The notes beneath the pieces are model-generated. The model was not told the origin of the DNA and ran no database searches. It was given only the letters and a program-made list of their open reading frames with translations. A program made the translations under genes and the position numbers. Source: Mizuhopecten yessoensis (Eukaryota). Taken from it: a stretch of DNA of 64,000 nt. The stretch is from positions 512,994-576,993 of the forward strand of contig NW_018407496.1 of assembly GCF_002113885.1 (NCBI RefSeq), given 5' to 3'. Each line of letters begins with the position of its first letter. The first letter of the stretch is position 1. This document shows, piece by piece, positions 33,287 through 60,228 of this stretch.

Positions 33287-33981
33287 GTAACCATAAAATA
33301 ATTTTCTCTTGGTATCAATGCGATGTTATATTTCCTTTTCCTGGATACTTACATGTTTTCAATATGATATTGTGTATTTGTGTATATCATTTAGGTATAA
33401 ACGCAAAGAGGAGTACTTCATTACAGTTCAAAATTAAAATATTTTTATAAATGAATAGGGAACTAAAATAGATAGCCTATTTTAGTTTAAAACTCGATTA
33501 AAACGCGGGCCCTTCATGGATAACCCTGCACCAAACATGTTTTAAGATAAATCGATGTTTCAGATGTGTCAGTAATGCTTGTGATGTAAAGTCTATTGAT
33601 AGATAAAAATAACAAGGAGATTAAGTAAACAACAAATGTCAACACCAATTTGTTCATCGTGGATAACGCAACATTTAAAGCCGCAAAGTAATAACAAATT
33701 GTGATATCACAATAGAATGTATGCAGCACATCACTTGACTTAGATGACATGAATCGATGTGTGAGATATGGCTGCATTTCGGTACTTTAGGTCAAATTCA
33801 AAAGTCAAATACAGATCGTGGTGACTCCGGTTTGGTACGCAACTTACAGCTTGACTGTACTTTGCTTGTATACTAAGAATGATGAATGCGAGATATACTG
33901 ATCCAATGTCGATTTAATACCACAGTCTATGATTTACTGAACATATTTGGGATATGAGCGATACTTTTTTTTTTTGTGCAG

Positions 33982-36900
33982 GATGGAAACATACCAATAG
34001 AGGAAAAAGTTGAAAATGGACACAACATTGTCACTTGCCATCACTCAGAACCGAAACACACCGAGTCGACTTTACCCCTAACAGAAGGAAACGTTACACC
34101 GCAATATCAGCATGGGCAAAGAGAAGAAAATGTACGATCTACGGAAAATGTACCAATGTCTGAGTATACGGGTAAAGACAATAGGTCAACTAATGCTAAT
34201 CATTCAATCTCACCGCTGCTTGGCGATACACAAACCTCCTCAGAATTACACCAAGTACTTCCCAAAGAAGAAAATAGCAAGCAGTCACCTCGAAAACTTT
34301 CTAGTCGTATTAGCAACACAGTACATGTTTACAAGTCTGCATCTACCTCCACCACCCGTGTAAAAAACCAAACCAGTAATTATTCTTTATCTCAGTCTCG
34401 AGGAATTCAGGAACTTTCAAGAAATGTCTTGGGTTCATTGCTAACCGCAAATGGTAACGTTACCAACGATTCATATAGATGGCTTGTCGACTCACGGAAA
34501 AAAACAGTCACTCCCTTCGGTGAATATGGTCATCCTCATTCGCATGACATAGGTCGTATAATTCAACCAAAGACTGTTATTCATCGAGGCAATAGCCCGA
34601 CACGTGGATCTTCCATACCTCTAACTTTACCTGATCATACTCAGTTAATTGACAGTAATAAATCTGAATCTGCCTTGCATATCTCTGCATGGAACCGATT
34701 GCCTCTTCGTCACAAAAGAACGTTAAATTTTAGTAGGAACTATGTACAGCATGGAAATGATGATTTAGAAGAGATTGGAGTAGAATTAATGTCAACAGTC
34801 AAAGAGTGGTGTTCTCAACATGATAGAAGTAGTATTGAATCCAACGTAACCATTGATAACCTACCACTACAAAATGATACCTTGGACGATTCTAACAAGG
34901 AAAACTTTCAACCTTTGCTCAAACTAGGTATAATTGATAAACCAGACAAACCTCAATCTCGTAACACTAAGAGTCATAACATCCTTGAAAGTGTCAATAC
35001 ATTGAAACTTGATAAGAACGACTTCGTCACAGGTGAGTTGACTACTGTGGAACAATATTCAAATGTTGGACCAGTTGTGTCTCCTCAGAAGGTTCTCAGC
35101 GACAATTTGAAAGTAGAAGAATTTAGTAATCCCGAAGATTATTCACCAGTGTTAATCAGTCAAAAGAAGCCAGTGTCAAGAAACAGGCAACAATCAGTGG
35201 CAAGCAATGGGCAACACTCAGAGACAACACACAAACAAATAGAAACAGCAAACACACAGCAATCAGAGGTCACAAAACGCCATCAACAGGAAGTTACAAA
35301 TAGTCTGCTAGTGGCAGCAAAAGCTCAACACATAAAAGCAATAAATTGCGAACAATCAAAAGCAACACATACACCACAAAAAGAAACAACAAATAGACAT
35401 GCACGGGAGACCAAAAATGGGAAACTGCAAGAGGCAACACATATACGTGGGGAGTCAGCAAACAACCAACAATCAGAGACCACAAAAGGGCAACAGTCAG
35501 AGACAACACTCAAAGAAATAGAGACAGCAAACAATCAACAACTAGAGATCACAAATGGGCGACAACCAAATACAACAAACAGACAGGAAGTGACAACAAA
35601 GCCTCAACAGATAAAAACAGCAAAGGCAACACACACAAAACAAATAGAAACAACACGTTACCAACAAGAAGACGACACACGTAGTCAACAACAAGAGACG
35701 GCAGACGAATACAAACTGGAGACAACAAAAATACAACAGCCAGACGCAACAAAAGGTCATCAACAAAGGGAAACAAATAATCAAATATCGGGTGAAATTT
35801 ACAAAGGACTACAGACAGGAACAAATGAAAAGCCAAATCAAGCAGGTGGACAACAACTACAAATAACAGGCCGTCAAACTTTAGAGGCAACCCATGGTCA
35901 AATAATAGAAACAACAAACGGTCAACAGCCGGGGCAGGCGAACAATCAACTTTCGCAAGAAATAAGCCGAAAGGAAGACCTTATAGAAACAAGAACGATG
36001 AAAAACCCTGCCATGGATGAAGAGAAACCATCTCAAACGTCAAATAGTGTTCGGGGGCCTGGTAACCACCGCGAAATGGAGCAACTGGATAATATTGGAT
36101 ATCAAACAAACGGGGAGGCATATACATATAAAAATGAGATGCATAAATATGGCAACAAGAAAGAAAACCATTTAAAAAATGACGGAGATTCTTCTGACAT
36201 GGATTCGAACCATATGCGCGAATACAAAGTCCTAAGCAACACAACGTTAACAAAGGCAAGTGATGCTAGAGATATGGCTTTGCGTTCTGTAGAAGAGTGT
36301 TCGGCTGCAATTAATGTTACATGTATTACCAATGAATACTCTTCAAAGACACTAATTCCTGACGATAAAGTTTCTAAGTCGAAAGGCATTGTCGTGGAAC
36401 AACAGTGTGGAGAAATCACTGTTGATGGTGAAGTGATTCACGTACAATCATCAGAAAGGCACACAAATGACCAAATCAACAACGCCACAGACATTTGTGA
36501 AAATTATTTGAACCAAAACACGGAAAGGAAAACATTGATTATGGAAAGAGAAACAAACACACGTGACAAGTTTTCGAGCATGGAAAGTAATTCCCAATCA
36601 TACCAACCACAAAAGGCAATGGTAAAATCTGTCGTTAATCTAAAGAACGAACAAAGCCCCGTAAAAATTTCAAAAGAACATACGATGACAGGAATAACTT
36701 CAGCGAAGCGTCAGAACGAGAACTCTCCACCCACAGAAGGACCCATGAAACTTTTGATATCTTCGAATACTTCGAATAACATCCATGACCGGCGGGAAGC
36801 AGCACGTGAATTGTCCTTCAAACTACGAGACGAAAAAGATGGTGACCTAAACATAAATGATTCGCGTCCAAAGGTGTCCCCCACAACCAAACAAACCAGC

Positions 36901-39900
36901 CAGATTAAAGATACAGTCATACCAGCGGACAGCTCTACTGGTGATGCTTCAACAAATAGGACAAAGCCTGGCATATACTCAACAACGAAACGAGTTGTGA
37001 TCAATAAATCTTTCTTCAGGAAAAGAAAGATTAACGAAACAACTGCAGATATGCTGAAAAATGACAAGACCGCAGCAACACATTCAGCAGAACGAGCTAG
37101 TGACAAAACAGATTTAATGAGTTTTAAAGATCAATCTAAACAGATGGTTGAAGATACCAACAAGCGTTGTGAGGGATATCATCCGGTGTTACAAAACCCC
37201 TGGATGATGACTTTCAATACTATTGATAGAGGCAACCAGAGTGGCGAACAAAAATGTACAAACGTGAAACTAGAGACATCGAGTAACAACAAGGAAGAGA
37301 ATAATGTAGAAACTCCCAACCAGATCGACCCTGCAAAACCAGCTTCCGTTTATAGAAAGGATGATTCATCTAAAGGTGAATCTGACCAAACAAACCGTGA
37401 AACAATTGAACCAGATTCAAAACGTGGTGCGGTCACATCGGCGAAGCCCTCTGATAGGGAAACCAATGAAGAAGTATTACTTACTGTTTCAATAGGCAAT
37501 AGTGAACTCTCGGAATTCTCCACTGAAGAGACCGTCTGTCCAAGTGCCGTCATACCAGACAAACCATTCGGAGAATCACGCCAGCTCCAAGTACAACCAA
37601 TGCAAGAACAGACCATCCATGATGCTCAGATGAAACATCTTCTTGATTCCATTCATGATCAAACCACAATAGAAAGTGATTTCTCTGATGATGTGAGTGG
37701 TGATTATTGTAACCACTCGGAAATGACACAAGATGTTCACATAATTAAGACTCTGCATGTGTCTTCACGAACAGATTCACCAGTTACACAACGAAAAGAT
37801 AATCCACCCGAGGAAAAGGTTACTTTGTTGAACAAAAGAGATAGACTTATGAAACCGTTGATGAAAAACATCATAAATGCTTCAAAAGAAAGTTCAACAA
37901 AAGCAGTAAATGCCGATAATGTTGACGGGAAAATTCAGTCGGAAAGTTGTACTTTACGCAAAGGTGAGCAACACAGCGGCTCAATGCCTAATATACAGCG
38001 AACGACTGTTCATAATGATAACGAAGATCGCCCCCGTGTTGTAATAAAATACAACCGGCAGCCGTATCCTCCTGAAGGGAGACCATTGAGTGCAAGTATG
38101 GGGTCATTCAGGTTCCATAAAATACAAGGCGTGTCTGGTGAACTTGAGAAAGCACAATCTTCAAATGATATTCGAGAAGATGGATATGTCGTCAAAGAAA
38201 CTGGATATGACACTGCCAAAGACAATGGTGATCAAGGAAATTGGACTAGCATTCACAGGGCAGACGTTTCTACAACAACGGGTCTGGAATCACCAAAAGG
38301 GAATCATGTCGATGCTTATTCTAAATCAGGAATCAACCAAAAATCTGTTTCAAATCCAAAGAGAGTCAGCAAACCCGCATCAAAGGTAGCTGTTGTTGTG
38401 GCTAAAAAGATCATGAACAAAAGGAAAACTGCTGCGCCACCTCTTCTCCGATTTGACAGCTATAAGGCAGATGATGACATTCAAATACCATCTGTCATTG
38501 CTTCTTACAAACGTTCGCCTGAAGTTGAGGGACTAACAAACGACACACAAGCATTTGGTCATCCTAACGGCCAATCAGAACAACCGTACGCAGAAGCCGA
38601 TATATACAGACAGAAAGATATAAATTCTGAAATCAATTCAGTCGGTTTTTCTCCAAGAGAACTAGCTTTCGCACAAAAGCTCTCTCATGGGGAAAGAAAA
38701 ACTATGACACCATCGAATATAGAAAAGGTGAGTTACCCTGATCTTGTTTCTTCAAACACAACACAAGATCACTCTGATTCTCGAGTGTCAAATTCACTAG
38801 GGACACCAATTAAATATTCTGAAAATCAACGAAAAAAAGCACTTCGTAAAAGTTTAAGTGGATCCGCTGCCTCGGATGATTTTCTTGAAATGGCAATGAG
38901 CGAGCGGAGGGTAGTTTTACCATCACGCTTCCAGGGAAGAAAGCAGAAAGTCGCGTCCTCTAGTCCTACTAGCCAAGCTAGTCAATATGGATCATCGTCT
39001 GATCCTAGACGTCGTCAGCAGCTGGAAAACAAACTTCATGGAAGTACCGACAGGAATAGAAACATGTTTCCATTTTCAAAAAGCACCGATTCTCCTCGCG
39101 TAATTCAAGCTTCAAAAAAGATTATGGTTAAAAGAGGTACACTGCATTCATCTCAGATAATAAATAGAAATGCTGATGTAGCTGATTCCTCTGGTGAACG
39201 CCCGGATGATGAACGGGTTGCACATTCAGGACATCCAATGTACCCACTCATCGGTGGAAGAACGTCTGGTGCGACATCTGTCGATCATGAACATGATTCT
39301 TTATTGCTTAATGATCAAGATACAGAACGAGAATACTATGAAATGGGAAAGTCGTCTGAACTATTAGACAGTGATGGAATGAGTTGTGGCTTTAGACAAG
39401 ATTTATCTCATTTACAAAACATTCTCGACGAAATTGAGCCAACAAAGAATATGAGTGGGTCTACAACCTCGAGCACGTTTTTGAGCACTGCGATAAGTGA
39501 ACGAAGAGCAATCTTTCCGTGTCGGCTAAGGAGCAAAGCCAACAACTCGACAACAGGTATCGGCCCTCCTGTACTTGCCTCCAAAAGAAGCACAACAGGT
39601 CTCCGCTATGTACGAGATAGCTCTGAAACGTCTATGCAAGATGGAAATAACAGTGTAATACCCACGGAGAGCTTTGAGAAAAACACTGGGGATGACCACT
39701 CTGGAATAAATATGGCCGCCGAAAGAACTGAAGTAAACATGATGGCAGATAGCTCACAGGGAAACATGACTGACGGTTATGAAGATCGACCTGATAGCAG
39801 TCATCTCCAACAAACAAAACGTGATGTGAATTCAGTAACTTCAGAGTATGCAGTGCAGCATTTTGAATCAAACAAATCACCAGAAGAAAAGATAAAGGCT

Positions 39901-40081
39901 GTCGCTAACAGGAATGTTCAGCTTCCTGTCCCAAAGCCCAGAGAAACACTTGTTCCGAGTAACTTTCCCGTTAACAAACATAGACTACCAACCGTCTATA
40001 ACCCGCTGAGGGAGACGGTAGCCGCGACAATCAATGCCCCGACCACACCAAGACTAACAACGGCTACTCCACTTGTAACAG
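33982..40081 (+). CDS. Gene A giant exon (6100 nt, ~2033 aa), S/T/Q/N/E/K-rich and predicted disordered, with an 8-aa Q/E/T repeat region
   Basis: Uninterrupted 2042-codon ORF bounded by the acceptor (t)11gtgcag| and the donor G|gtaaga. Confidence 0.9.
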
Positions 40082-40367
40082 GTAAGACGTCCAAGTTTAT
40101 ATAAATATATAAAGAGGTAAGTGCATCTTTCTAGACGTTTGATTTCCCCCTTATAAAAGTATTTTATTACCGCCGGTATTTGGATACTTCATTTAAAATG
40201 AAAATGTTACTTATAGTTATATAATATAATAAGTTTAATCTGAAAATTGTGGCATGTCTTAGAACTCATTAGAATAATTTATAAAAGATATCACAATATG
40301 AACGAATTCTGATAAAGCAATGCTACTAAACTCTTTAACAGTACATGTATTTCATTATCTCTCACAG

Positions 40368-40600
40368 CTGTTAGGGAAGACTCAGTTGAGGGAAATGAGA
40401 TAGTGAAACCCATTATCCGGAAGCCGGCGATGGAATCTATCCCAGCAGTGTCGAGGAAGATAAAGAACTTCCGGTCCAGACAGAAGATGGTGTTGACAGG
40501 GAGACTACATCAAAAGAGCGAGGAAAACTTGAAATTTTTTAAACAAATTTCAAAAACAACAGCCGATTTTTATAAGGATCGCACGAGAAATGTACAATAA
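40368..40600 (+). CDS. Gene A terminal exon (...SEENLKFFKQISKTTADFYKDRTRNVQ*)
   Basis: Acceptor ctctcacag| in phase 1, matching the donor at 40081. The TAA stop overlaps an AATAAA. Confidence 0.75.
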
Positions 40601-42779: not shown

Positions 42780-43915
42780 TTCCCCAGCTAGTTAGTAGGA
42801 GCTTGGTTCAAACTTATTGGGGTGATTTTCCCATTGTTTGTTTCACCTGGTCTGAAAAGAAAACAGGGATGGGGCATTTACCACTTGATCAGAGAGATCA
42901 TTCCAGTTATTTACCATTCTTAACTTGAACGAGTGGCCACGCAGATTACTTCTACACCTTAATTTTTCTAGTTTCTGGTTGTGACCTCTGGTTATTCTTG
43001 TTACATTGATTTTTAGAAAGTCATCTTTGATGTTGTCTATCCTATTTATTAACTTGAAAGCAGTAGGAAAGCTTGCACCATGTCTGACCTAAGTCTCCTG
43101 TACTCCATAGTGGGTAGCCCAAGAGCCTTAATTAAGTCTTTCAAGATAGGATAGGTCTTTGATACCAGGGACCAGTTTAGTGGCTCTCCTTTGGACATTT
43201 TCAATGGATATTTTATCCTTTATAAGCATGGGGGCCCAGACTACAACAGAGGTCTCTAGATATGGTCTTACAAGAGACTTATGTAGGAACATTGCCTTAT
43301 TTACACCGCTAAAAGTCCTAAAAATCATTCCTTCATTTCTGTTTGCTTTGGCTACTAACAGATTTACATGTTCACTTAACTTTAGATTATTGTCTATAGT
43401 CACGCCTAGATCCCTTTCACTAGCAACAGATTGTAGTTTGTGTACTTCCCCCTGTTTGATGATGTTGTATGAAGTATCACATTTAACAGCTCCTTGATGT
43501 AATTTTAGATGCTTACACTTCTCAGAGTTTAGCTCCATCATCCATGTTCTTCAACTTCTTGTCAAGTTGTTTAAACGGTGTAGATCTTCTTGAAGATGTT
43601 GCCCCTGATCTCCTGGATCCATTGCACGATAGATCTTGGTATCATCTGCAAACATTTTGGTCAGAATATGAATGACCTAGGGAAGGTCGTTTACATAGAT
43701 GAGAAATAAGACTGGCCCCAGCACACTACCCTGGGGGACTCCACTTATGACTTGGCATGTGCTTGATGCTCCATATCATTCAAGAAGTCTGTAATCCACC
43801 CCAATATGTCCCCGTTGATGCCATATCTCTTTATTTTATGCAATAGTCTCCTATGGGGTACTTTATCAAAGGCTTTTTTGTAATCCAAATAAATGACATC
43901 CACTTGCTTGCTTGT
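42780..43915 (-). mobile_element. 5'-truncated CR1-clade LINE, decayed RT
   Basis: VDVIYLDYKKAFDKVPHRRLL; [21 protein letters not shown]; KMFADDTKIY; ERDLGVTID; VRPYLE...WAP...ENVQRRATKLVPG. Confidence 0.92.
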
Positions 43916-44756
43916 TAATGCATTATTACACAAATTCCTCCAAAAAAACCCTGATCACTACAATTGCACTCATGCCTATGAGTTCTGTCACAGTTATCAG
44001 AAGAAGAAGAGTTTCCTTTATATTGCTTACCTTGTAAAGTAATTGCCTGATATCAAAAGCCAGACTATCTCTAGATAAAGTAAACAAATGTCACCACTTC
44101 TCTACTCAGCTGTCTTATGACATAGAATGTCATAGATTATTGACTTATGGACCTTTTGCAGATTGTTTTATGTTGGGGCCATAGTTCACAACATCATCTT
44201 TAAATCAGTCTACATCAAAAAAATAAATAAATGTGACTCATTCATAAGTTATGGAAATTATTCTGATGAGTTTGTTTATTATAAAGGCTGACATGGTCCA
44301 AGGTTCTCATTGTGTCGAAAGTATTTGTTATGTTTGTTTGCATCATACCAATAGTTAATGCATACTGGTTGCCAGTCTGTTCTTGTCATGTGCACATTCT
44401 CACCATGACATATGATGAAACCTCAAATTCTTTCAATGCAAACTACAAAATCTGTGTTTGTCCCTGTAATTTTGTTTACATCAACAGTTCTGTGCGACAT
44501 CCTTTACATTATAAGGTCCTACCTCCTGGCAACCAGCCCAGTAGATTATTAGCTGTGCTTTTCTAATTACAAAATTACAAAACTATCTTTTTCATACTTT
44601 TATTCTTTTAAACAGATTGCTATGACATGTACTTAGCTAAGTCACTAGAAAACAATACTTGAGAACAACTAATTCATAATGTATGTACATAACTGCTTAT
44701 TTTCTAATTTAATTACCATTCCATTGCCCAAAACTCCTTTTTTGTTCTAATTTTAG

Positions 44757-46929: not shown

Positions 46930-49920
46930 TTCATTTACCACTGACAATTAATCACCACTATCAATTTACCTACCACTCACAATCCACCCACCAATCACAA
47001 GTCACCTATCACTCACAATCCACCTTCCACTCACAATTTCATTCACAATCTCCCTTCCACTAACAATTTACCTATCACTCACAATCTACCTTCCACTCAC
47101 AATTTACCTTCCACTCACAATCCACCTACCACTCACAAGTCAGCTATCACTAGCAATTTACCTATCACTCACAATCTGCCTTCCAATCACAATTTACCTA
47201 TCCCTCAGAATCTCCCTTCCACTAACAATTTACCTATCACTCACAATTTACCTATCACACACAATCTACCTATCACTCACAAACTACCTTTCACTCACAA
47301 TTTACCTTCCACTCACAATCCACCTACCACTCACAAGTCAGCTATCACTAGCAATTTACCTATCACTCACAATCTGCCTTCCAATCACAATTTACCTATC
47401 CCTCAGAATCTACCTTCCACTAACAATTTACCTATCACTCACAAACCACCCACCACTCACAATTTCAATCACAATCTACCTTACACTAGCAATTTACCTA
47501 TCACTCACAATCTACCTTCCACTAACAATTAACCTATCACTCACAATCCCCCTTCCACTAACAACCCCCCTCCCACTAACAACCCCCCTCCCACTAACAA
47601 CCCCCCTACCCCCCACAACCCCCCTTCCCCTAACAACCCCCCTACCCCCCACAACCCCCCTTCCCCTAACAACCCCCCTACCCCCCACAACCCCCCTTCC
47701 CCTAACAACCCCCCTACCACTCACAATCCACCCACCAATCACAAGTCACCTATCAATCAGAATCTACCTTCCACTAACATTTTACCTATCACTCACAATC
47801 CACCTTCCACTAACAATCCACCTACCACTCACAATCCGCCTACCGCTACCACTCACAATCCACATACTACTCATAATTTATCAACCAATCTAACAATTTA
47901 CCTATCACTCACAATTTACCTATCACTCACAATTTACCTATCACTCACAATCCACCCACCACTTACAAGTCACCTATCACTAACAATTTACCTATCACTC
48001 ACAATTTACCTATCACACACAATCTACCTATCACTCACAAACTACCTTTCACTCACAATTTACCTTCCACTCACAATCCACCTACCACTCACAAGTCAGC
48101 TATCACTAGCAATTTACCTATCACTCACAATCTGCCTTCCACTAACAATTTACCTATCACTCACAATCCACCCACCACTCACAATTTCAATCACAATCTA
48201 CCTTCCACTAACAATTTACCTATCACTCACAATCTACCTTCCACTAACAATTAACCTATCACTCACAATTTACCTTCAACTAACAAAATACCAATCACTC
48301 AAAATTTACCTATCACTCACAATCCACCCACCCCTCCCAATTTCAATCACAATCTACCTTCCACTAACAATTTACCTATCACTCACAATCTACCTTCCAC
48401 TCACAATTTACCTTCCACTCACAATCCACCTACCACTCAAAGTCACCTATCAACTATCAATCAGAATCTACCTTCCACTAACATTTTACCTATCACTCAC
48501 AATCCACCTACCACTTACAATTTACCTATCACTCACAATCCACCCACCACTCACAAGTCACCTATCACTAACAATTTACCTATCACTCACAATTTACCTA
48601 TCACTCACAGTCTACCTTCCACTCACAATTTACCTATCACTCAGAATCTACCTTCCACTAACAATTTACTTATCACTCACAATCCACCTACCACTAACAA
48701 TTTACCTATCACTCACAATCTACCTTCCACTAACAATTTACCTATCACTCATAATCCACCTACCACTAATAATCCACCCAACATTCACATGGAGTCACAA
48801 GTCACCTATCATTAACAATCCACCTTCCACTCACAATTTATCTAACACTCACAATCTACCTTCCACTAACAATTTACCTACCACTCATAATCCACCTACC
48901 ACTCAATCCACCTACCACTCACAATCCGCCTACCGCTACCACTCACAATCCACAAACTACTCATAATTTATCAACCATTCACAATCAACCTTCCAATCAC
49001 AAACCACCTTAACAATCACAATCCACCATACCACTCACAACCCATCTTACCACTCACAATCCACCTACTACTTTATCTTCNCTCACAATCCACCTTCCAC
49101 TCACAATTTCACTCACAATCTACCTTCTACTAACAATTTACCTATCACTAACAATCTACCTTCCACTAACAATTTACCTATCACTCACAATTTACCTTCC
49201 ACTAACAATTTACCTATCACTCACAATTAACCTTCCACTAACAATTTACCTATCACTCACAATTTACCTATCACTCACAATCCACCCACCCCTCACAAGT
49301 CACCTATCACTAACAATTTACCTATCACTCACAATTTACCTATCACTCACAATCTACCTTTCACTCACAATTTACCTTCAACTCACAATCCACCTACCAC
49401 TCAAAAGTCACCTATCACTAGCAATTACCTATCACTCACAATCTACCTTCCACTCACAATTTATCTATCACTCAGAATCTACCTACCACTAACAATTTAC
49501 CTATCACTCACAATCTACCTTCCAATCACAATCCACCCACCACTAATAATCCACCCACCACTCACATGGAATCACAAGTCACCTATCATTAACAATCCAC
49601 CTTCCACTCACAATTTATCTATCACTCACAATCTACCTTCCACTAACAATTTACCTATCACTCACAATTCACCTACTGCTCATCATCCACCTACCACTCA
49701 ATCCACCTACCACTCACAATCCACATACCTCTCACAATCCACCTACCATTACCACTCACAGTCTACATACTACTCACAATTTATCTACCATTCACAATCC
49801 ACCTACCAATCACAAACCACCTCCACCTTACCACTCACAACCCATCTTACCACTCACAATCCACCTTACCACTCACAACCCATCTTACCACTCACAATCC
49901 ACCTACTACTTAATCTTAAC
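46930..49920. repeat. ~3-kb intronic 18-bp C/A-rich satellite with a C-run-rich patch at 47545-47720
   Basis: Units such as tcactcacaatttaccta and ccactaacaatctacctt. The + strand has almost no G. N at 49081. Confidence 0.95.
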
Positions 49921-53845: not shown

Positions 53846-56789
53846 ATGCAAAACAACGAGAAAAACCTATGAGTCTGATATCCTCAACAGCATCCTGTGA
53901 ATTACCTGGTGCTATGGGTACTGTGGTGGAGAAAACAAATTGCTGCACGACCACAGTGAAGATGGAGAACAGGACAGAAAGCAAATCTGTCCAATTCCAA
54001 AACAATGTCATAGTGTATCCAAGTCCTTCTGGTGTAGTGGACACTAACTCAAGCAGTGGACAGATGACAGTGGAATGTCTGTCTGACCTCCGGTCAGAGG
54101 GACTCCGCGTAGGCGAGGACTGTAAGGCTAGGAGACCAGCCACACCTGGCAAACTTCTCAATGAAGGGGAGACAACTGCCTCCCAACCCCTGACGCCTGC
54201 ACCTATGAATGAAGGAAAGAAAACAGTCTCTCCACCTCAGACATCCACATATGTGACTGTGAAAGATCCAGATTACACCCCTCGTACTCCACGGAACACT
54301 GTAAAACCAGAGAGTGACAAAGGAAAGACTAACACATCTTTACCTCAATGTACAGCTAGTAGCCAACAGACCAAGACACTGATTGAAGAGTCTAAAGGAG
54401 ATCTCTATGTTAAAGAAGTTGGAAATAGTTCTACCTTGGACAATGACATTCCCCCAGAAGAAGTGTGTGCCAAGCGCTCGTGGAGTAGATTAGATCTTTC
54501 AACTTATCCAACAAACGATGACTGCTTCAGAACAAGTGAGAAAGTTTTGTCTGGCGAGGAAAGAAATGAGAAAGTAAGGAAGAATATGTCTGACGTCAAT
54601 GTTGTTGATACTGACAGGCAGGAATTAGAGGAGAAAGCTAGGCGACGAGCAGACAGGAAGAAAAGAAAAGAAATGAGAATGGCTGCTGAAGGTTACATAA
54701 AAGAACAAGAAAACCTACCTCAGGAGGAGAAACGTAAATTAAAAAAAAAGGCAAAAAAGAAAAACATTCAAAAGAAAACAGCAATAAATAGTGAAGAGCC
54801 AGCCGGCCAAAAGGAATACAGACACCAGAGAGTAATGAGATTGGAGGCAGAGAGAGACACAACAAATCTCAATGGACAGGAAGGTAGCGATGGTACTGTC
54901 ACATTTGAAGATAAACTACTACACTGGGAAAAAATGAAAACAACAGGAGACAATCGCTCACTTGATGGTCAGGAGGAAACAAACAAACCTGCTAGGAAAA
55001 CGAGAACAAAAAAGAAGAAAAACAGAGAACTACCAGCAGCTGGAGATGAGGGTATGGGTACTGAGAAAGCAAAGAGGAAAGAAAGGACACACATGGAGCA
55101 TGACGTGAATAAAGAAGATATCCTAGGGTCTGGAGAAGAGACTGGTGAGTGCATAGAGCCTATAGAACATGCAATGCATCCACACAAAAAGCCACATAAA
55201 TACAACGAAAGCAGATATAGAGAAGACACTGTTTTAAAGCACAGCAGTGATGATGAGATACACACTTATCATGTAGACCATTCAAAGATTTATTGTGAAG
55301 ACAATTCCAAGATTGGACAGGCAGATTCAAACTTTCTAGATGAAATTGGTAAGGAGAAGCTCTCTCAAGAGGAACGAAGAAAAAAACAGACCAAAAGGAA
55401 AAAAATGAAAGAGGCCATAGCAGCAGGAAATGAACACTCGAATGACATGAGGAAGGAATATCCAGATGACCAGGTTATCACTCAGATGAGCAGAGAAGAC
55501 AATGATTACCAGAGGGAACATGTTACTGATCAAGACAAAATTGAGGGGATGCAGCAGGAAATTGCAGAAATCTTAGGTCTGTCATCAAATTCAGACCAGG
55601 CACAAAGAATTAAACATAGACGAGGAATGGTCAACAAAGATACCAATCACATTTTCAAGGATGAGCAAGGATGTGAAAACAGTGGAAACCAAAAGTCTGA
55701 AGATTTCGAAGCACTTAGATATGAAAGGGACTCAGCTATTGGTTTCCAAAATGAGAAAGGTAATGCCAAATCAAAAAGTAAACTCATGAATTTTACATGT
55801 GGGGAAAGAATCCAGCAACAGAAGTCCAGACAAAAGAGAAAAGTCAAAAACTTAAATGACGATCAATTATCCAGTGCAGTTTTTACTTCAGAAAATCCTA
55901 TCATCCATGATGGATACCCTGTAATTACAGATTCTGTCTCTCCTCAAACGGTGATGAATGAGGATGTTTTAGATGTAAATCCCATCCCTTTGACATCCAG
56001 TTATGAAAGTAACGCTCCTGTTCAAAGTGAATCAAATAAGAAGTATGTTCATGCAGGAGTGGGACCAACACATTCTGAAGATGTTTCACAGAAAGCTGTT
56101 CATGTGGCCAAAACCAAACCTGTGACTGTTGCTAGTGGAGAAAGACGTAGAAAGTCTTCAAACAAAAACAGGGACAACCGAGACAATTCTACAACTGATG
56201 AAGTGAGCTCTACATATGTTAAAGGGCACAAACAGTCCCCTGGTGGTCAACACATTGGTCAGCAGTACTCTGTTGACCACCAACATGTCTCTTTATATCC
56301 AGAGGAAGAAGAAGATGACCACACAGTCAACTTCCACAAAGATCTTTCGTCCCAAGTTTCGACATGGGCACCTGGAAACCAACCCAGGATGCAGGACAGG
56401 GTACAAACTGCAGAAAATTACTTGCTGATGGCAAAACAGGACAGTTCATTGGAAACACCAGGCATTGGTGGAAACAGAAAGGGACATTTTAATGAAGAAG
56501 ATAGGGTCACCCACAGTTCATCAACATATCCAAGGGAGAGAGATGCCTCAAACCACATCAACATTACCACCAGAGATGGTGACCTTCTACCTACAGCGCC
56601 TACTTCACCAGAAAGTGACGAGGATAGACAGCGCGAACAAGTGTCAAGTCATCAGGATGTAAAGGATCACTATCTGTCAATCACAGAACTAGATCGTCCA
56701 AGGCCGGTCGGATGTGATGTGGATATAGATCTGGGTCGAGAGATGAAGCCTGGATTAGAATCGGCTGTCAGGAGGATGAACCAATTGGG
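53846..56789 (+). CDS. Gene B giant exon (2944 nt), charged and disordered with K/R-rich tracts
   Basis: tttttccag| in frame with the 974-aa ORF. Donor GG|gtgagt, phase 1 to 2. Confidence 0.9.
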
Positions 56790-57327
56790 GTGAGTAGACC
56801 ATCACATGGTCTACATAAACGTAACTAGGTCAAGAAAAAAATACAAATCTTTTGAAAGTTATGACACAGGTCTGAGAAGTTTCTATTGTAGTGCACCTCT
56901 GGGTAGCTAAAATGAAAAACTTGTGACAAGCTTCAGAAATTTCATATAAAATATTCATATTAAACTTAAATGAGCCCAAGAAATAGGTTCATAGTTCACT
57001 ATTAAACATTTATTATTATTCAATATTCATAAGAAGTTATTTTCCAGGTATAGTTTTTGCGGTAGTTTAAATTTCACCTTCTATAATAAGGGAAAATTTA
57101 TCATGTGAGGGCAAATATTAGTACACACCATACATTGCATAGTCATTACATTAGAAGAATGAAAATAACACAGGGCAAATATCAATTTTACCGGTGCAGG
57201 GTAAAAGTTTGACTAGGTGAAAGTTTCCCAGTATGACATGTTTTATGTAGGAATTTGTAATAAGTGTACAAGCATATTTTGAAACATGTTTACTTTATCT
57301 GTATACATTTTGTTGAAGAACCTACAG

Positions 57328-57559
57328 TGGCAGTATTAGTCGGCCGGAGTCTAGATCCCTGTGGAGTACTTCCACCATGAGTATCCCCCACTCCATCCAG
57401 GAAGAGGATGAGACAGAGGAGTCGGAGGATCAGACAGGACAAGATCCTAGTGATGAGGATAGAGGAGAAGAGATATCCTACACAGATACAGGACAAGAAA
57501 ACCATATCAAGTATCCAGCACCGGGTCCCAGGGAGGAGCTGGCTCCAAACGTGTTTAAG
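57328..57559 (+). CDS. Gene B exon (GSISRPESRSLWSTSTMSIPHSIQEEDE...APNVFK)
   Basis: cctacag| ... AAG|gtaact, phase 2 to 0. Confidence 0.75.
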
Positions 57560-57883: not shown

Positions 57884-57983
57884 GTGGATAAGATGAACCT
57901 GCCACCGGTATGTGTGGTACAGAAGGAGGATGTAACTAAATCAGCTAGTGTGAGAAAACCCGGGCACAGCACTATTCAGACAG
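57884..57983 (+). CDS. Gene B exon (VDKMNLPPVCVVQKEDVTKSASVRKPGHSTIQT)
   Basis: ttgacag| ... G|gtaaac, phase 0 to 1. Confidence 0.65.
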
Positions 57984-58320
57984 GTAAACATGGAAATCTT
58001 TAGTACTGTAACTAGTGTTAGGTCTGCTGAACAATAACCACTAGGGTAAGATTGGAGATTCTGTTTTCAATGAAACTTTTCCCAAGTGAATTATTCCCCT
58101 TTGCTTGTTTGACATGTTTGTCGAGTGCTTACTTCAGGCTTCACTGTAAAAATACTAGTTAATATTATAAATTCATAAAAAAAGCTTCATTATTGAGATC
58201 AAACACTGCTGAATGGGGCTAATGAAAGCATTTCCCTGTATAATATGGTATGCTGCTGTCTTCATTATGACTAATGGTGCTCATTGTCAGATAAAATGAT
58301 GAACTATGTCCTGATTTCAG

Positions 58321-60131
58321 GTAAAGAACAGGACAGTCGTACAGAGGACATCAGACCTGTAAGTAAGCAGGTCAGAGTTGATGACATACAAAGCAGATTA
58401 TCTCCTGAACTGGAGACCTTTCTCGCTCAGTACAGTGATCTTAAATCTGACGTGGAAGCGAGCTTGATCCCAGATCAGACCTGGGAAGAGATTACTAAAC
58501 CCATAGGTCAATTCAGACCCAAGGCAAGATACTCTGCTGACAAACCTCAGGGAATACAGGGTCAGAAACTACATATCACAGAAGGGAATGATGAGCCGAG
58601 TATAGCTAATCCAACTCCTACAATGCTGCCTGCTCATTTGAATAGAAAACAGAGAGCACATTATGAGAAACTCCAAGTGACTTTCCGTGCCCCAGAAAAG
58701 AATCTTCCAGGAGCCCAGTTTTGGAAAGATTTAAATGCAGATAAGTTGGTATCAGAAGCTGTTTCACAGGATCTGTTCATCAAGACACCATTCGGTCATA
58801 CCTTCCCAAACGAATGTGAGAATCAACAGATGTCTCCTATCAAAGCTTATCTTGATGACTATTCTCATCAGAGTGATGCTGCATTAGATGAGACAGGGTA
58901 TGAAAGTATGGAGCAGTTGGAGAACTATGACAACAGTCCAGAGTCATTGTCTGACCTGAGGAACAAGCTGAGTAAGATTTGCAGTGAGGAGGTCGAGTCA
59001 GACCCAGCTCCACGTCCACCGTCTCCACCTGGTGGAACGGACATGATTGAAGTATCCACAGATCCTAGATTCTGGAAATCACATGACTCATCAGGCAGGG
59101 ATTCGTCTCGATTGTCTGCTGAAGTTTTATCAAGAATTGAGAATTGTGCAGGTCAGAATGTCGACATGTTACAGTTTGCTGATGAAAACAGTAGCTACGA
59201 AGATGAACAATTTCATGAAGATTACAAAGAGCCCTCCTATGCACCAAGCCTAATAGATCGCTATCACTCAAAAAATGAAGAAAATATTGACTTCTTCAGA
59301 TGTGTTTCTAGAGGAGGTCTGAACAATATACAATCACTGAGGACAGAAGAGGAGAATATTGCTAGATCCTTTGCTAGAACAGACTCTAGGGAACACACAG
59401 TTGATGATGAAACAGTCGATGCCAACTTACTCTTTTTCAAAACAGTAGCAAGATATCCCGAGTTTAATGAGCAGGAGATTGAGACCACTGACTCTAAGGT
59501 TGTCAAGTCGAGATGTGGCAGGAGGAGTCCGGGGTTCATTCCTGATGATCCCAGCAACTACATCAGTGGAGAAGTAGCTCACCAAAACTTAGAATTCTTC
59601 CGAGCTGTAGCCAGAGACACCAGCTTCTTCAAGTTACCTGACAAGGAGGACCAGGACAGTGAGGACAATTCTGATGAAGATTCTACACCACCAAGAAATA
59701 AGCTTGAAGCTGATTCTTCCCTACAGAACGACACAACTAGCTGTCACAAAGACAGGTCTCATCACCATACCAAAATGCCTAGTCAGAAACCAGCTTCCAA
59801 AATATTGAATCGCTTTCAACGCAAGACATTAGCACAAGATCATTTGGACAGTCAAAAGACGGGTCCTCCTCATCTGTCTAAGTTGTACTCCAAAAGGACT
59901 GATGGCCTCAGTCTCTTACAACCAGTGGTGTCTCCCTGCAAAGCCAAGGAAAACATGGACTTCTTTTTACAAGTCTCTAAGGATCCTCATTTCTATAAGA
60001 TTGCAGAAAAACCAGAAGTACCAGTAATGGTAGCTCCGAATAATAAACCAAAGTCATACAAAGGCATCAATGTCAACAGTGGGCGACCCATAGGCAAGAA
60101 GGGACTAGGCTTCAAGTCACGACTTACCTAG
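58321..60131 (+). CDS. Gene B terminal exon with four ENLxFFxxV[SA][RK] repeats
   Basis: ctgatttcag| in phase 1, within the 615-aa ORF ending at TAG. The nine exons total 5663 nt (~1890 codons) with no stop. Confidence 0.88.
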
Positions 60132-60228
60132 GGCTTCAAGTCACGACTTACCTAGGGCTTCAAGTCACGACTTACCTAGGGCTTCAAGTCACAACTTACC
60201 TTGGGCATCAAGTCACCACTTGCCTAGG
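60107..60228. repeat. 25-bp tandem repeat (~5 copies) overlapping the gene B stop codon
   Basis: Unit ggcttcaagtcacgacttacctagg. Confidence 0.9.

Follow-up and report, generated by a model that had tools for sequence, protein, structure and literature searches.

A repeated, predicted helical FF motif in a disordered protein family of pteriomorph bivalves

Bivalve genomes hold many lineage-restricted and unannotated genes for disordered proteins, and the question raised by the locus described here is which elements of one such gene are conserved, and what they could do. The locus lies in a 64,000-nucleotide (nt) stretch of the Mizuhopecten yessoensis genome (contig NW_018407496.1, positions 512,994 to 576,993), which is called the window below and is numbered from its first letter. 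It concerns gene B, a + strand gene whose last exon encodes four copies of a short motif with two adjacent phenylalanines (the FF motif). The original prediction, drawn from the sequence, listed these four copies and a half copy in an otherwise disordered context, did not recognise the motif, and proposed a multivalent short linear or helical interaction motif. The conserved elements of the gene have now been mapped, and the reading favoured here, with somewhat more confidence than doubt, is that the FF module is a new helical docking motif, repeated for multivalency, in a disordered scaffold family of pteriomorph bivalves.

Motif copies and their conservation

A regular-expression scan of all six frames of the window with N[LIMV]xFFxxV[SA][RK] yields four matches in a single + strand frame, inside the open reading frame (ORF) 58284-60131, and none in the other frames. 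The corresponding Asn codons are at 59283, 59424, 59586 and 59952, and the coordinates agree with those initially given for the four copies and the half copy (Table 1). Judging from the aligned sequences, the consensus module is 17-18 residues long and reads A-x-E-N-[LM]-x-F-F-[RK]-x-[VI]-[AS]-[RK]-[DN]-P-x-F-[FYW], with a predicted amphipathic alpha-helix that is succeeded by a turn and then by an aromatic pair. The half copy is a decayed full copy, because the orthologue P0001 reads MAFFREASSDPRIWK at this site, with the FF pair still present, and because full copies align there in mussel-type relatives.

Copy 1 lacks the DPxF[FY] tail, and its counterpart is the 'GR.H.KE.ENLxFF' copy of mussels and pearl oysters, as well as the single copy of the neighbouring gene A. 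Copy 3 is the most widely conserved one; a G[FY]IPDDPxNY block always precedes it, and Y, A, N, F, F and F are invariant in its region across 14 sequences (alignments A5 and A7). Copy 4 is nearly identical in all five scallop sequences. Copy 2 is polymorphic: at 59466, contigs of runs X15 and X20 carry an A>T allele that changes N383 to Y. The T allele gives YPEFYE (PEFY), as in other scallops, the reference allele being the odd one. The X15 contig differs further by E384G (59470 A>G) and, in a linker, by three extra nucleotides (AGG) that are inserted in frame after 59727.

Repeats in a protein of biased composition call for a comparison with chance. The motif pattern was matched in none of 20,000 shuffles of the exon protein, which contains five FF pairs against a shuffle mean of 1.1. 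At the DNA level, the copies share only one stretch, of 17 nt at 88% identity, and the codons used for the same residues differ between copies. Since the copies differ synonymously and no DNA repeat is present, their conservation is placed at the protein level, as had been proposed from the non-repetitive DNA between them. Identity across five scallop sequences amounts to 82% within the motifs versus 55% outside, and the inside value was reached by 106 of 20,000 random placements of four windows; the orthologues conserve the FF motif above background. The motif is far beyond chance and selectively conserved. A chance or compositional artefact, or non-coding sequence, would have nothing but the low complexity of the surrounding protein in its favour, and it conflicts with the shuffles, with conservation from scallop to oyster, and with the RNA contigs and splice joint described below; the orthologue alignments already refute it, and its probability is practically nil.

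The four motifs are not isolated in the exon, since they make up four of about 11 conserved islands. The disordered context first described is supported by the low predicted local distance difference test (pLDDT) scores that AlphaFold2 assigns between the motifs, and it has to be amended in that the exon is not featureless.

Relatives were sought exon by exon. An orthologue with 47% identity (P0001) was found on a Logan genomic contig by word-indexed search, and 13 proteins were found by an exhaustive HMMER search, whose profile was built from only two scallop sequences. A word-indexed search with a 12-sequence family profile returned only two sequences, both already known. The scallop orthologues include Pecten maximus LOC117316777 (XP_033727440), Ylistrum balloti LOC132544670 and Argopecten irradians XP_069121668, and the distant homologues Mytilus californianus LOC127729017, Pinctada imbricata FSP39_005442 and Crassostrea virginica LOC111132553, the last corresponding to the P0013/P0035 group by cluster look-up. 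All of them are labelled 'uncharacterized', save the Argopecten irradians protein, which bears the spurious name 'enolase-phosphatase E1-like'. The named relatives are all pteriomorph bivalves, the closest named orthologues are all Pectinidae, and, so far as seen in these sequences, the family appears restricted to pteriomorphs (scallops, mussels, pearl oysters and oysters).

The motif is kept in every relative found, from scallops to Mytilus, Pinctada and Crassostrea virginica, so that the protein-level conservation noticed within gene B is borne out in orthologues and distant relatives alike. Counting from the Asn, which is invariant in 38/38 instances, F is present at +4 in all 38 and at +3 in 37. 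The neighbouring positions are nearly as constrained, with L/M at +1 in 35 instances, R/K at +5 in 32, V/I at +7 in 30 and A/S at +8 in 36. The tail is looser (R/K at +9 in 29, D/N at +10 in 21, P at +11 in 17, F at +13 in 23, and F/Y/W at +14 in 26). One orthologue, on genomic contig L001, is about 50% identical to gene B at the protein level, and synonymous sites are for that reason saturated in this comparison.

Repeat architecture, predicted helices and proposed function

At least two copies of EN[LM]xFF[RK]x[VI][AS][RK] are present in each of the 14 family members examined, gene B having four. Three features characterize the family: a block of the form xVTF[RK]A..N[LV]PDAxFWKDLNxGK, which is fitted by 58647-58736 of gene B; a copy that follows GR.H.KE in mussels and pearl oysters, or DRYHSKNE in scallops; and a copy with a G[FY][IV]PDDPxNY[IV] block 5-6 residues upstream, which IPDDPSNY of gene B fits. 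Oysters have 2 copies per protein, the pearl-oyster types 2-3, mussels 5-7, and scallops 4 together with the half copy. From one start to the next, the copies are mostly 42-60 residues apart across the family, with exactly 47 residues between copies 1 and 2 in 5/5 scallops. This spacing suggests that the motif is what survives of a degenerate repeat of about 50 residues, whose conserved core it would form, and that the copies are not short linear motifs scattered independently of each other. Units gained and lost by individual lineages would then explain the variation in copy number. Of the interaction motif first proposed, the predicted helix, the repetition and the disordered context thus stand, and the repeat core is a refinement of it.

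Periodicity of this kind invites a different explanation, in which units of about 50 residues bind one subunit each of a repeating structure, for example a cytoskeletal polymer (microtubules, actin) or a row of EF-hand proteins like the centrins on Sfi1, and the protein acts as a ruler or stabiliser, not as a hub for a soluble partner. The repeats of Sfi1, nebulin and tau are known cases in which units bind the subunits of repeating structures, and the host proteins of the FF motif are likewise long and disordered. The fairly regular spacing speaks for such a binder (50-55 residues in P0006 and 45-58 in Mytilus, with 47 from copy 1 to copy 2 of scallops), and so does the character of the copies as basic amphipathic helices that bear bulky aromatics and end in a tail of the F[FWY]K type. 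Against this, spacing is inconstant, with 83 and 69 residues in oysters and 97-127 residues before the last scallop copy, and Pfam reveals no similarity to known microtubule-, actin- or centrin-binding repeats, so that lattice binding is a possible, if unlikely, reading. In a related proposal, the FF module would be an undescribed, bivalve-specific repeat of about 50 residues, with one unit per subunit of a filament or EF-hand array and with copy number tuning length or valency (1 in gene A, 2 in oysters, 4-5 in scallops, and up to 7 in mussels); this is considered improbable.

Structure prediction supports a helical motif. In an AlphaFold2 model of a 150-residue stretch with copies 1-3, computed from a 14-sequence alignment, helices are formed on copy 2 (pLDDT ~84) and copy 3 (pLDDT ~90), with a predicted template modelling score (pTM) of 0.23. 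An oyster-type exon of 317 residues (P0009) has a mean pLDDT of 50.5 and a pTM of 0.18, and its confident helices are the last motif (pLDDT 91) and a short one on the FWKDLN block (pLDDT ~76). Hydrophobic moments of the 12-residue cores point the same way, being 0.44-0.62 at 100 degrees (helix) and 0.27-0.39 at 170 degrees (strand). The D-P that often follows should terminate the helix and expose the second aromatic pair. Packing of the motifs into a small folded domain is ruled out for now, as the helices are isolated in both models and pTM does not exceed the range 0.18-0.23.

The same models bear on self-association. Aromatic-rich helices between long charged disordered spacers are the classic sticker-and-spacer layout, and FF helices that bind each other, or other parts of the same protein, could give oligomers or condensates in place of recruiting a separate folded partner. 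AlphaFold2 shows no helix-helix packing, gene A and some relatives carry just one or two copies, and the invariant Asn within a strict register of L, FF, V and A/S points to a stereospecific interface; stickers of this kind are therefore quite improbable.

On a helical wheel, L at +1, F at +3 and +4, V at +7 and A/S at +8 fall on the same side, which has the invariant Asn at its centre and is bordered by R/K. Such an amphipathic helix, with basic residues beside its hydrophobic face, is reminiscent of membrane-binding helices. This fits poorly with an invariant Asn on the hydrophobic face, with acidic residues at -1 and +2, and with a length of only about 12-16 residues; moreover, lipid-binding helices accept exchanges as long as their physicochemical character is preserved, and a sequence as strictly conserved as this one is unusual among them. 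Membrane binding is, on balance, very improbable. A buried, invariant polar residue on a hydrophobic face argues rather for a stereospecific protein interface.

Under the favoured reading of the FF module as a docking motif, each copy would fold on binding and insert its hydrophobic side (L, F, F, V/I, A/S), along with the invariant Asn, into a groove of one common folded partner. With 2-7 copies, the protein would become a multivalent scaffold. We infer partner binding, and several points weigh against this reading. The docking function is argued by analogy with conserved helical motifs in other disordered proteins, and the fairly regular spacing of about 50 residues also fits a polymer-binding or self-assembling repeat. 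The helix of copy 1 is weak (pLDDT ~50 in AlphaFold2), and the structure models are built on shallow alignments of 14-17 sequences. The FF motif is also not the sole functional element, given some seven further conserved islands in the exon. Finally, the taxonomic range may be underestimated, since the exhaustive search started from two scallop sequences and the later word search with the family profile added nothing.

The FF motif has survived the divergence of scallops, mussels and oysters while the rest of the protein changed freely, and it offers experiments a direct way into an orphan family. If docking is true, the motif would represent a new class of helical docking motif.

Gene B, gene A and the remainder of the window

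The coordinates of the exons, motif copies and conserved blocks are collected in Table 1.

Table 1. Exons, motif copies and conserved blocks of genes A and B in the window (HMM, hidden Markov model)
Feature	Position	Strand	Evidence
Gene A, giant disordered exon	33976..40081	+	ORF 33976-40104, 2042 codons
Gene A, terminal exon, 233 nt, ends ...GRLHQKSEENLKFFKQISKTTADFYKDRTRNVQ (stop), single motif copy 40508-40576	40368..40600	+	Profile matches, ORF, splice sites
Gene B, large upstream exon, ~974 codons, disordered, K/E/R-rich	53869..56789	+	BLASTP; 5' boundary near 53869 approximate
Gene B, exon ending ...YPAPGPREELAPNVFK	57319..57559	+	Splice joint, sequence, alignment to Ylistrum P0003
Gene B, exon of 100 nt, VDKMNLPPVCVVQKEDV...IQT(G)	57884..57983	+	Sequence and match to Ylistrum balloti P0003 'VDKMNLPPVCNVQKENL'
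Gene B, last exon	58321..60131	+	ORF, acceptor, orthologue alignments, RNA contigs
Conserved N-terminal exon block KQRAHYEKLQVTFRAPEKNLPGAQFWKDLN	58647..58736	+	Alignments
Degenerate half copy EVSTDPRFWK	59049..59078	+	Alignments; motif HMM match weak
Copy 1 EENIDFFRCVSR	59277..59312	+	Regular expression, alignment; motif HMM 26.6 bits
Copy 2 DANLLFFKTVARYPEFNE	59418..59471	+	Regular expression, alignment; motif HMM 27.5 bits
Conserved block IPDDPSNY, directly upstream of copy 3	59538..59561	+	Alignments
Copy 3 HQNLEFFRAVARDTSFFK	59580..59633	+	Regular expression, alignments; motif HMM 31.0 bits
Copy 4 KENMDFFLQVSKDPHFYK	59946..59999	+	Regular expression, alignments; motif HMM 40.0 bits
Scallop-specific conserved C-terminal block YKGINVNSGRPIGKKGLGFKSR	60057..60122	+	Alignments

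The + strand frame that contains 59040-59999 is open over 615 codons (58284-60131). The last exon takes up 603 of them, including a split first codon, ends with the stop TAG at 60129-60131, and carries all gene B copies. Its acceptor (tttcag followed by GT, 58320/58321) is in phase 1, and is found at the same position and in the same phase in the orthologous genomic contig L001. The 100-nt exon upstream runs from phase 0 to phase 1, in keeping with a last exon in phase 1; no RNA splice joint is seen for it. As the upstream exon ends in phase 1 and the phase-1 acceptor is shared with L001, the boundaries of the last exon are set as in Table 1. Alignments of the annotated orthologues end at the same C-terminus, and the exon had thus been correctly named the last one. 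Within it, F and W of the N-terminal block are nearly invariant family-wide (alignment A3), F54 and W55 being invariant in alignment A7.

Gene B is transcribed and spliced: a run X14 contig carries the GT..AG joint 56789/57319, and 58983-60063 is covered by contigs of run X15 and of RNA-Seq library X20. The 974-codon ORF upstream matches Pecten maximus LOC117316777 by BLASTP (E = 2e-95 and 9e-54). Between 54600 and 55500, this exon contains K/R-rich blocks, ARRRADRKKRKEMRMAAEGYIKEQE and LSQEERRKKQTKRKKMKEAIAAGNE, which are near-identical in Pecten maximus despite diverged surroundings; they could serve as nuclear localisation signals, or represent another helical motif.

The 3' end of gene B runs into a tandem array (60108-60228) of a 24-bp unit, GGCTTCAAGTCACGACTTACCTAG, in five head-to-tail copies with 93% matches. 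The first unit encodes the last eight gene B codons (GFKSRLT plus the stop TAG), which indicates that the array arose by tandem duplication of the coding 3' end, stop included, and leaves the protein unchanged. The unit is present only once in the orthologous contig L001. A contig of run X18 covers the array at the very high word depth of 410, so that the unit may also occur elsewhere.

In oyster-type contigs (L002 2616-3746 and 6135-6635; L014 5635-7098), the motif-bearing ORF is the last of several + strand ORFs. An upstream ORF of L002 matches the N-terminal part of Crassostrea virginica LOC111132553 (…ENDC.FSHGDGEAL…LRRQRMERLQQLR…). From this ORF order and this match, a multi-exon layout with a motif-bearing last exon appears to be shared.

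A sixth motif copy lies in the neighbouring gene A. It was found by a motif-profile search of the species' own genome (987,588,634 bases in 82,659 contigs; E = 9.2e-4), and a local motif HMM run on the six-frame translation of the window gives it 27.4 bits (E = 2.7e-7); beyond the copies of genes A and B, nothing in that translation exceeds 10 bits. In the whole genome, the motif profile matches the four gene B copies, gene A and one 209-bp contig, and the whole-exon profile matches only gene B. The two gene A exons of Table 1 are joined by a donor (G followed by GTAAGA, 40081/40082) and an acceptor (cacag followed by CT, 40367/40368), both in phase 1, the join being read from the DNA only.

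The terminal exon of gene A best matches copy 1 of gene B (BLASTP E = 6e-5), and the end of its giant exon, VQLPVPKPRETLVPSNFPVNK, resembles the PGPREELAPNVFK block of gene B (E = 1e-5 versus P0003; E = 2e-4). On the strength of these two likenesses, gene A is a probable tandem paralogue of gene B that keeps a single motif. Its giant exon contains internal Q/T/E-rich repeats (…QQSETTKGQQ…). The 209-bp contig (L011, G000:C10799:1-209) repeats the final part of the terminal exon of gene A apart from a single amino-acid change, ENLKFF to ENLNFF, and is probably an unmerged haplotype.

Two further elements lie between or near the genes. On the - strand between genes A and B (43128-43933), ORFs resemble, by eye, fragments of a non-LTR (long terminal repeat) retrotransposon reverse transcriptase (…KQVDVIYLDYKKAFDKVPHRRLL…). 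At 47512-47742, a short-period tandem repeat of intergenic or intronic position reads as GRGVV repeats in one - strand frame.

Comparison with known families and motifs

A motif conserved across four bivalve groups could have been described under another name. For the exon, Pfam-A returns 0 families at E <= 10. The 13 relatives give only spurious Pfam matches, nearly all below the curated cut-off and none on the FF-motif region; Bac_rhamnosid6H, LysC, RNase_Y_N and DUF1062 were set aside as low-complexity noise outside that region. No Pfam family is found in the other large exons. The ESM Atlas, queried with the exon tail and with P0009, gives no usable match, the PDB sequences give nothing with whole-family profiles, and a literature search on motif strings and LOC/XP identifiers returned nothing relevant. 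The motif profile has a single match among PDB sequences, human lipocalin NGAL, residues ~120-136 (MVFFKKVSQNREYFKIT; E ~0.02, 17.9 bits). It is regarded as a chance match, the segment lying inside a folded chain and lacking both the invariant Asn and the E-N-L start. The initial failure to recognise the motif is thus matched by Pfam, the PDB sequences and the literature searched, where no described family corresponds to it.

Short motifs that contain FF deserve a comparison of their own, since the module could be one of them: the ATG8-binding LIR (LC3-interacting region), the VAP-binding FFAT (two phenylalanines in an acidic tract), the REV1-interacting region (RIR), the PCNA-binding PIP (PCNA-interacting protein) box or the LSm14 FFD box. 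The minimal LIR/AIM (Atg8-interacting motif) pattern F-x-x-[VIL], here F at +4 and [VIL] at +7 with upstream acidic residues, occurs in 31/38 instances; F is followed by a basic residue, and a helix is predicted here, whereas LIR and FFAT bind in an extended form. The RIR pattern, FF followed by four non-proline residues, is formally present, but it is very loose and leaves the other conserved positions unexplained. Neither pattern is tight enough to be informative, and the predicted helix is explained by neither. FFAT is rejected because position +5 (FFAT position 4) is R in 18, K in 14, L in 5 and Q in 1 of the 38 instances, and is neither acidic nor phosphorylatable. The LSm14/Scd6 FFD box is rejected as well, there being no Asp after FF and no FDF/FFD-type Pfam match; both FFAT and the FFD box require an acidic residue where R/K dominates here. 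In the PIP box, Q-x-x-[LIM]-x-x-[FY]-[FY], two residues separate the aliphatic residue from the aromatic pair, and the FF motif has one between [LM] and FF in 38/38 instances. As the invariant Asn and the [AS][RK][DN]PxF[FY] tail are accounted for by no class of this set, membership in one of them has only a slim chance.

Outside the FF motif, a PP1-binding RVxF (KVTF in the N-terminal block) was tried and rejected; it is found in P0001 and P0008, and not in the window (QVTF), in Mytilus (QCTF) or in the Pinctada-type proteins. The centrin-binding repeats of Sfi1 follow the consensus Ax7LLx3[FL]xxW[KR] about every 33 residues. A repeat of this type was likewise rejected, by inspection, as register and spacing (42-60 residues) differ.

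The nearest likenesses are within the family itself. The scallop, mussel, pearl oyster and oyster relatives resemble gene B in having a C-terminal exon with FWKDLN, PDDPxNY and 2-7 FF motifs. They carry no described function or domain, and their large N-terminal disordered parts cannot be aligned between orders.

Among described motifs, FFAT (EFFDAxE, bound by VAP) and the LSm14 FFD box resemble the FF motif in having a di-phenylalanine after acidic residues. They differ from it in that the FF motif is predicted to be helical, not extended, and in that its N, V/I, A/S, R/K and DPxFF are foreign to both. A broader resemblance is offered by the Sfi1 repeats, LD motifs and LxxLL boxes, all of which are short amphipathic helices with a fixed hydrophobic register, repeated in a non-globular protein. 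The tail of the FF motif, an aromatic pair with K/R, is superficially like the F/LxxW[KR] end of the Sfi1 repeats. Unlike these three, however, the FF motif has its own consensus, its own spacing and an invariant Asn, and Pfam provides no sequence link between them.

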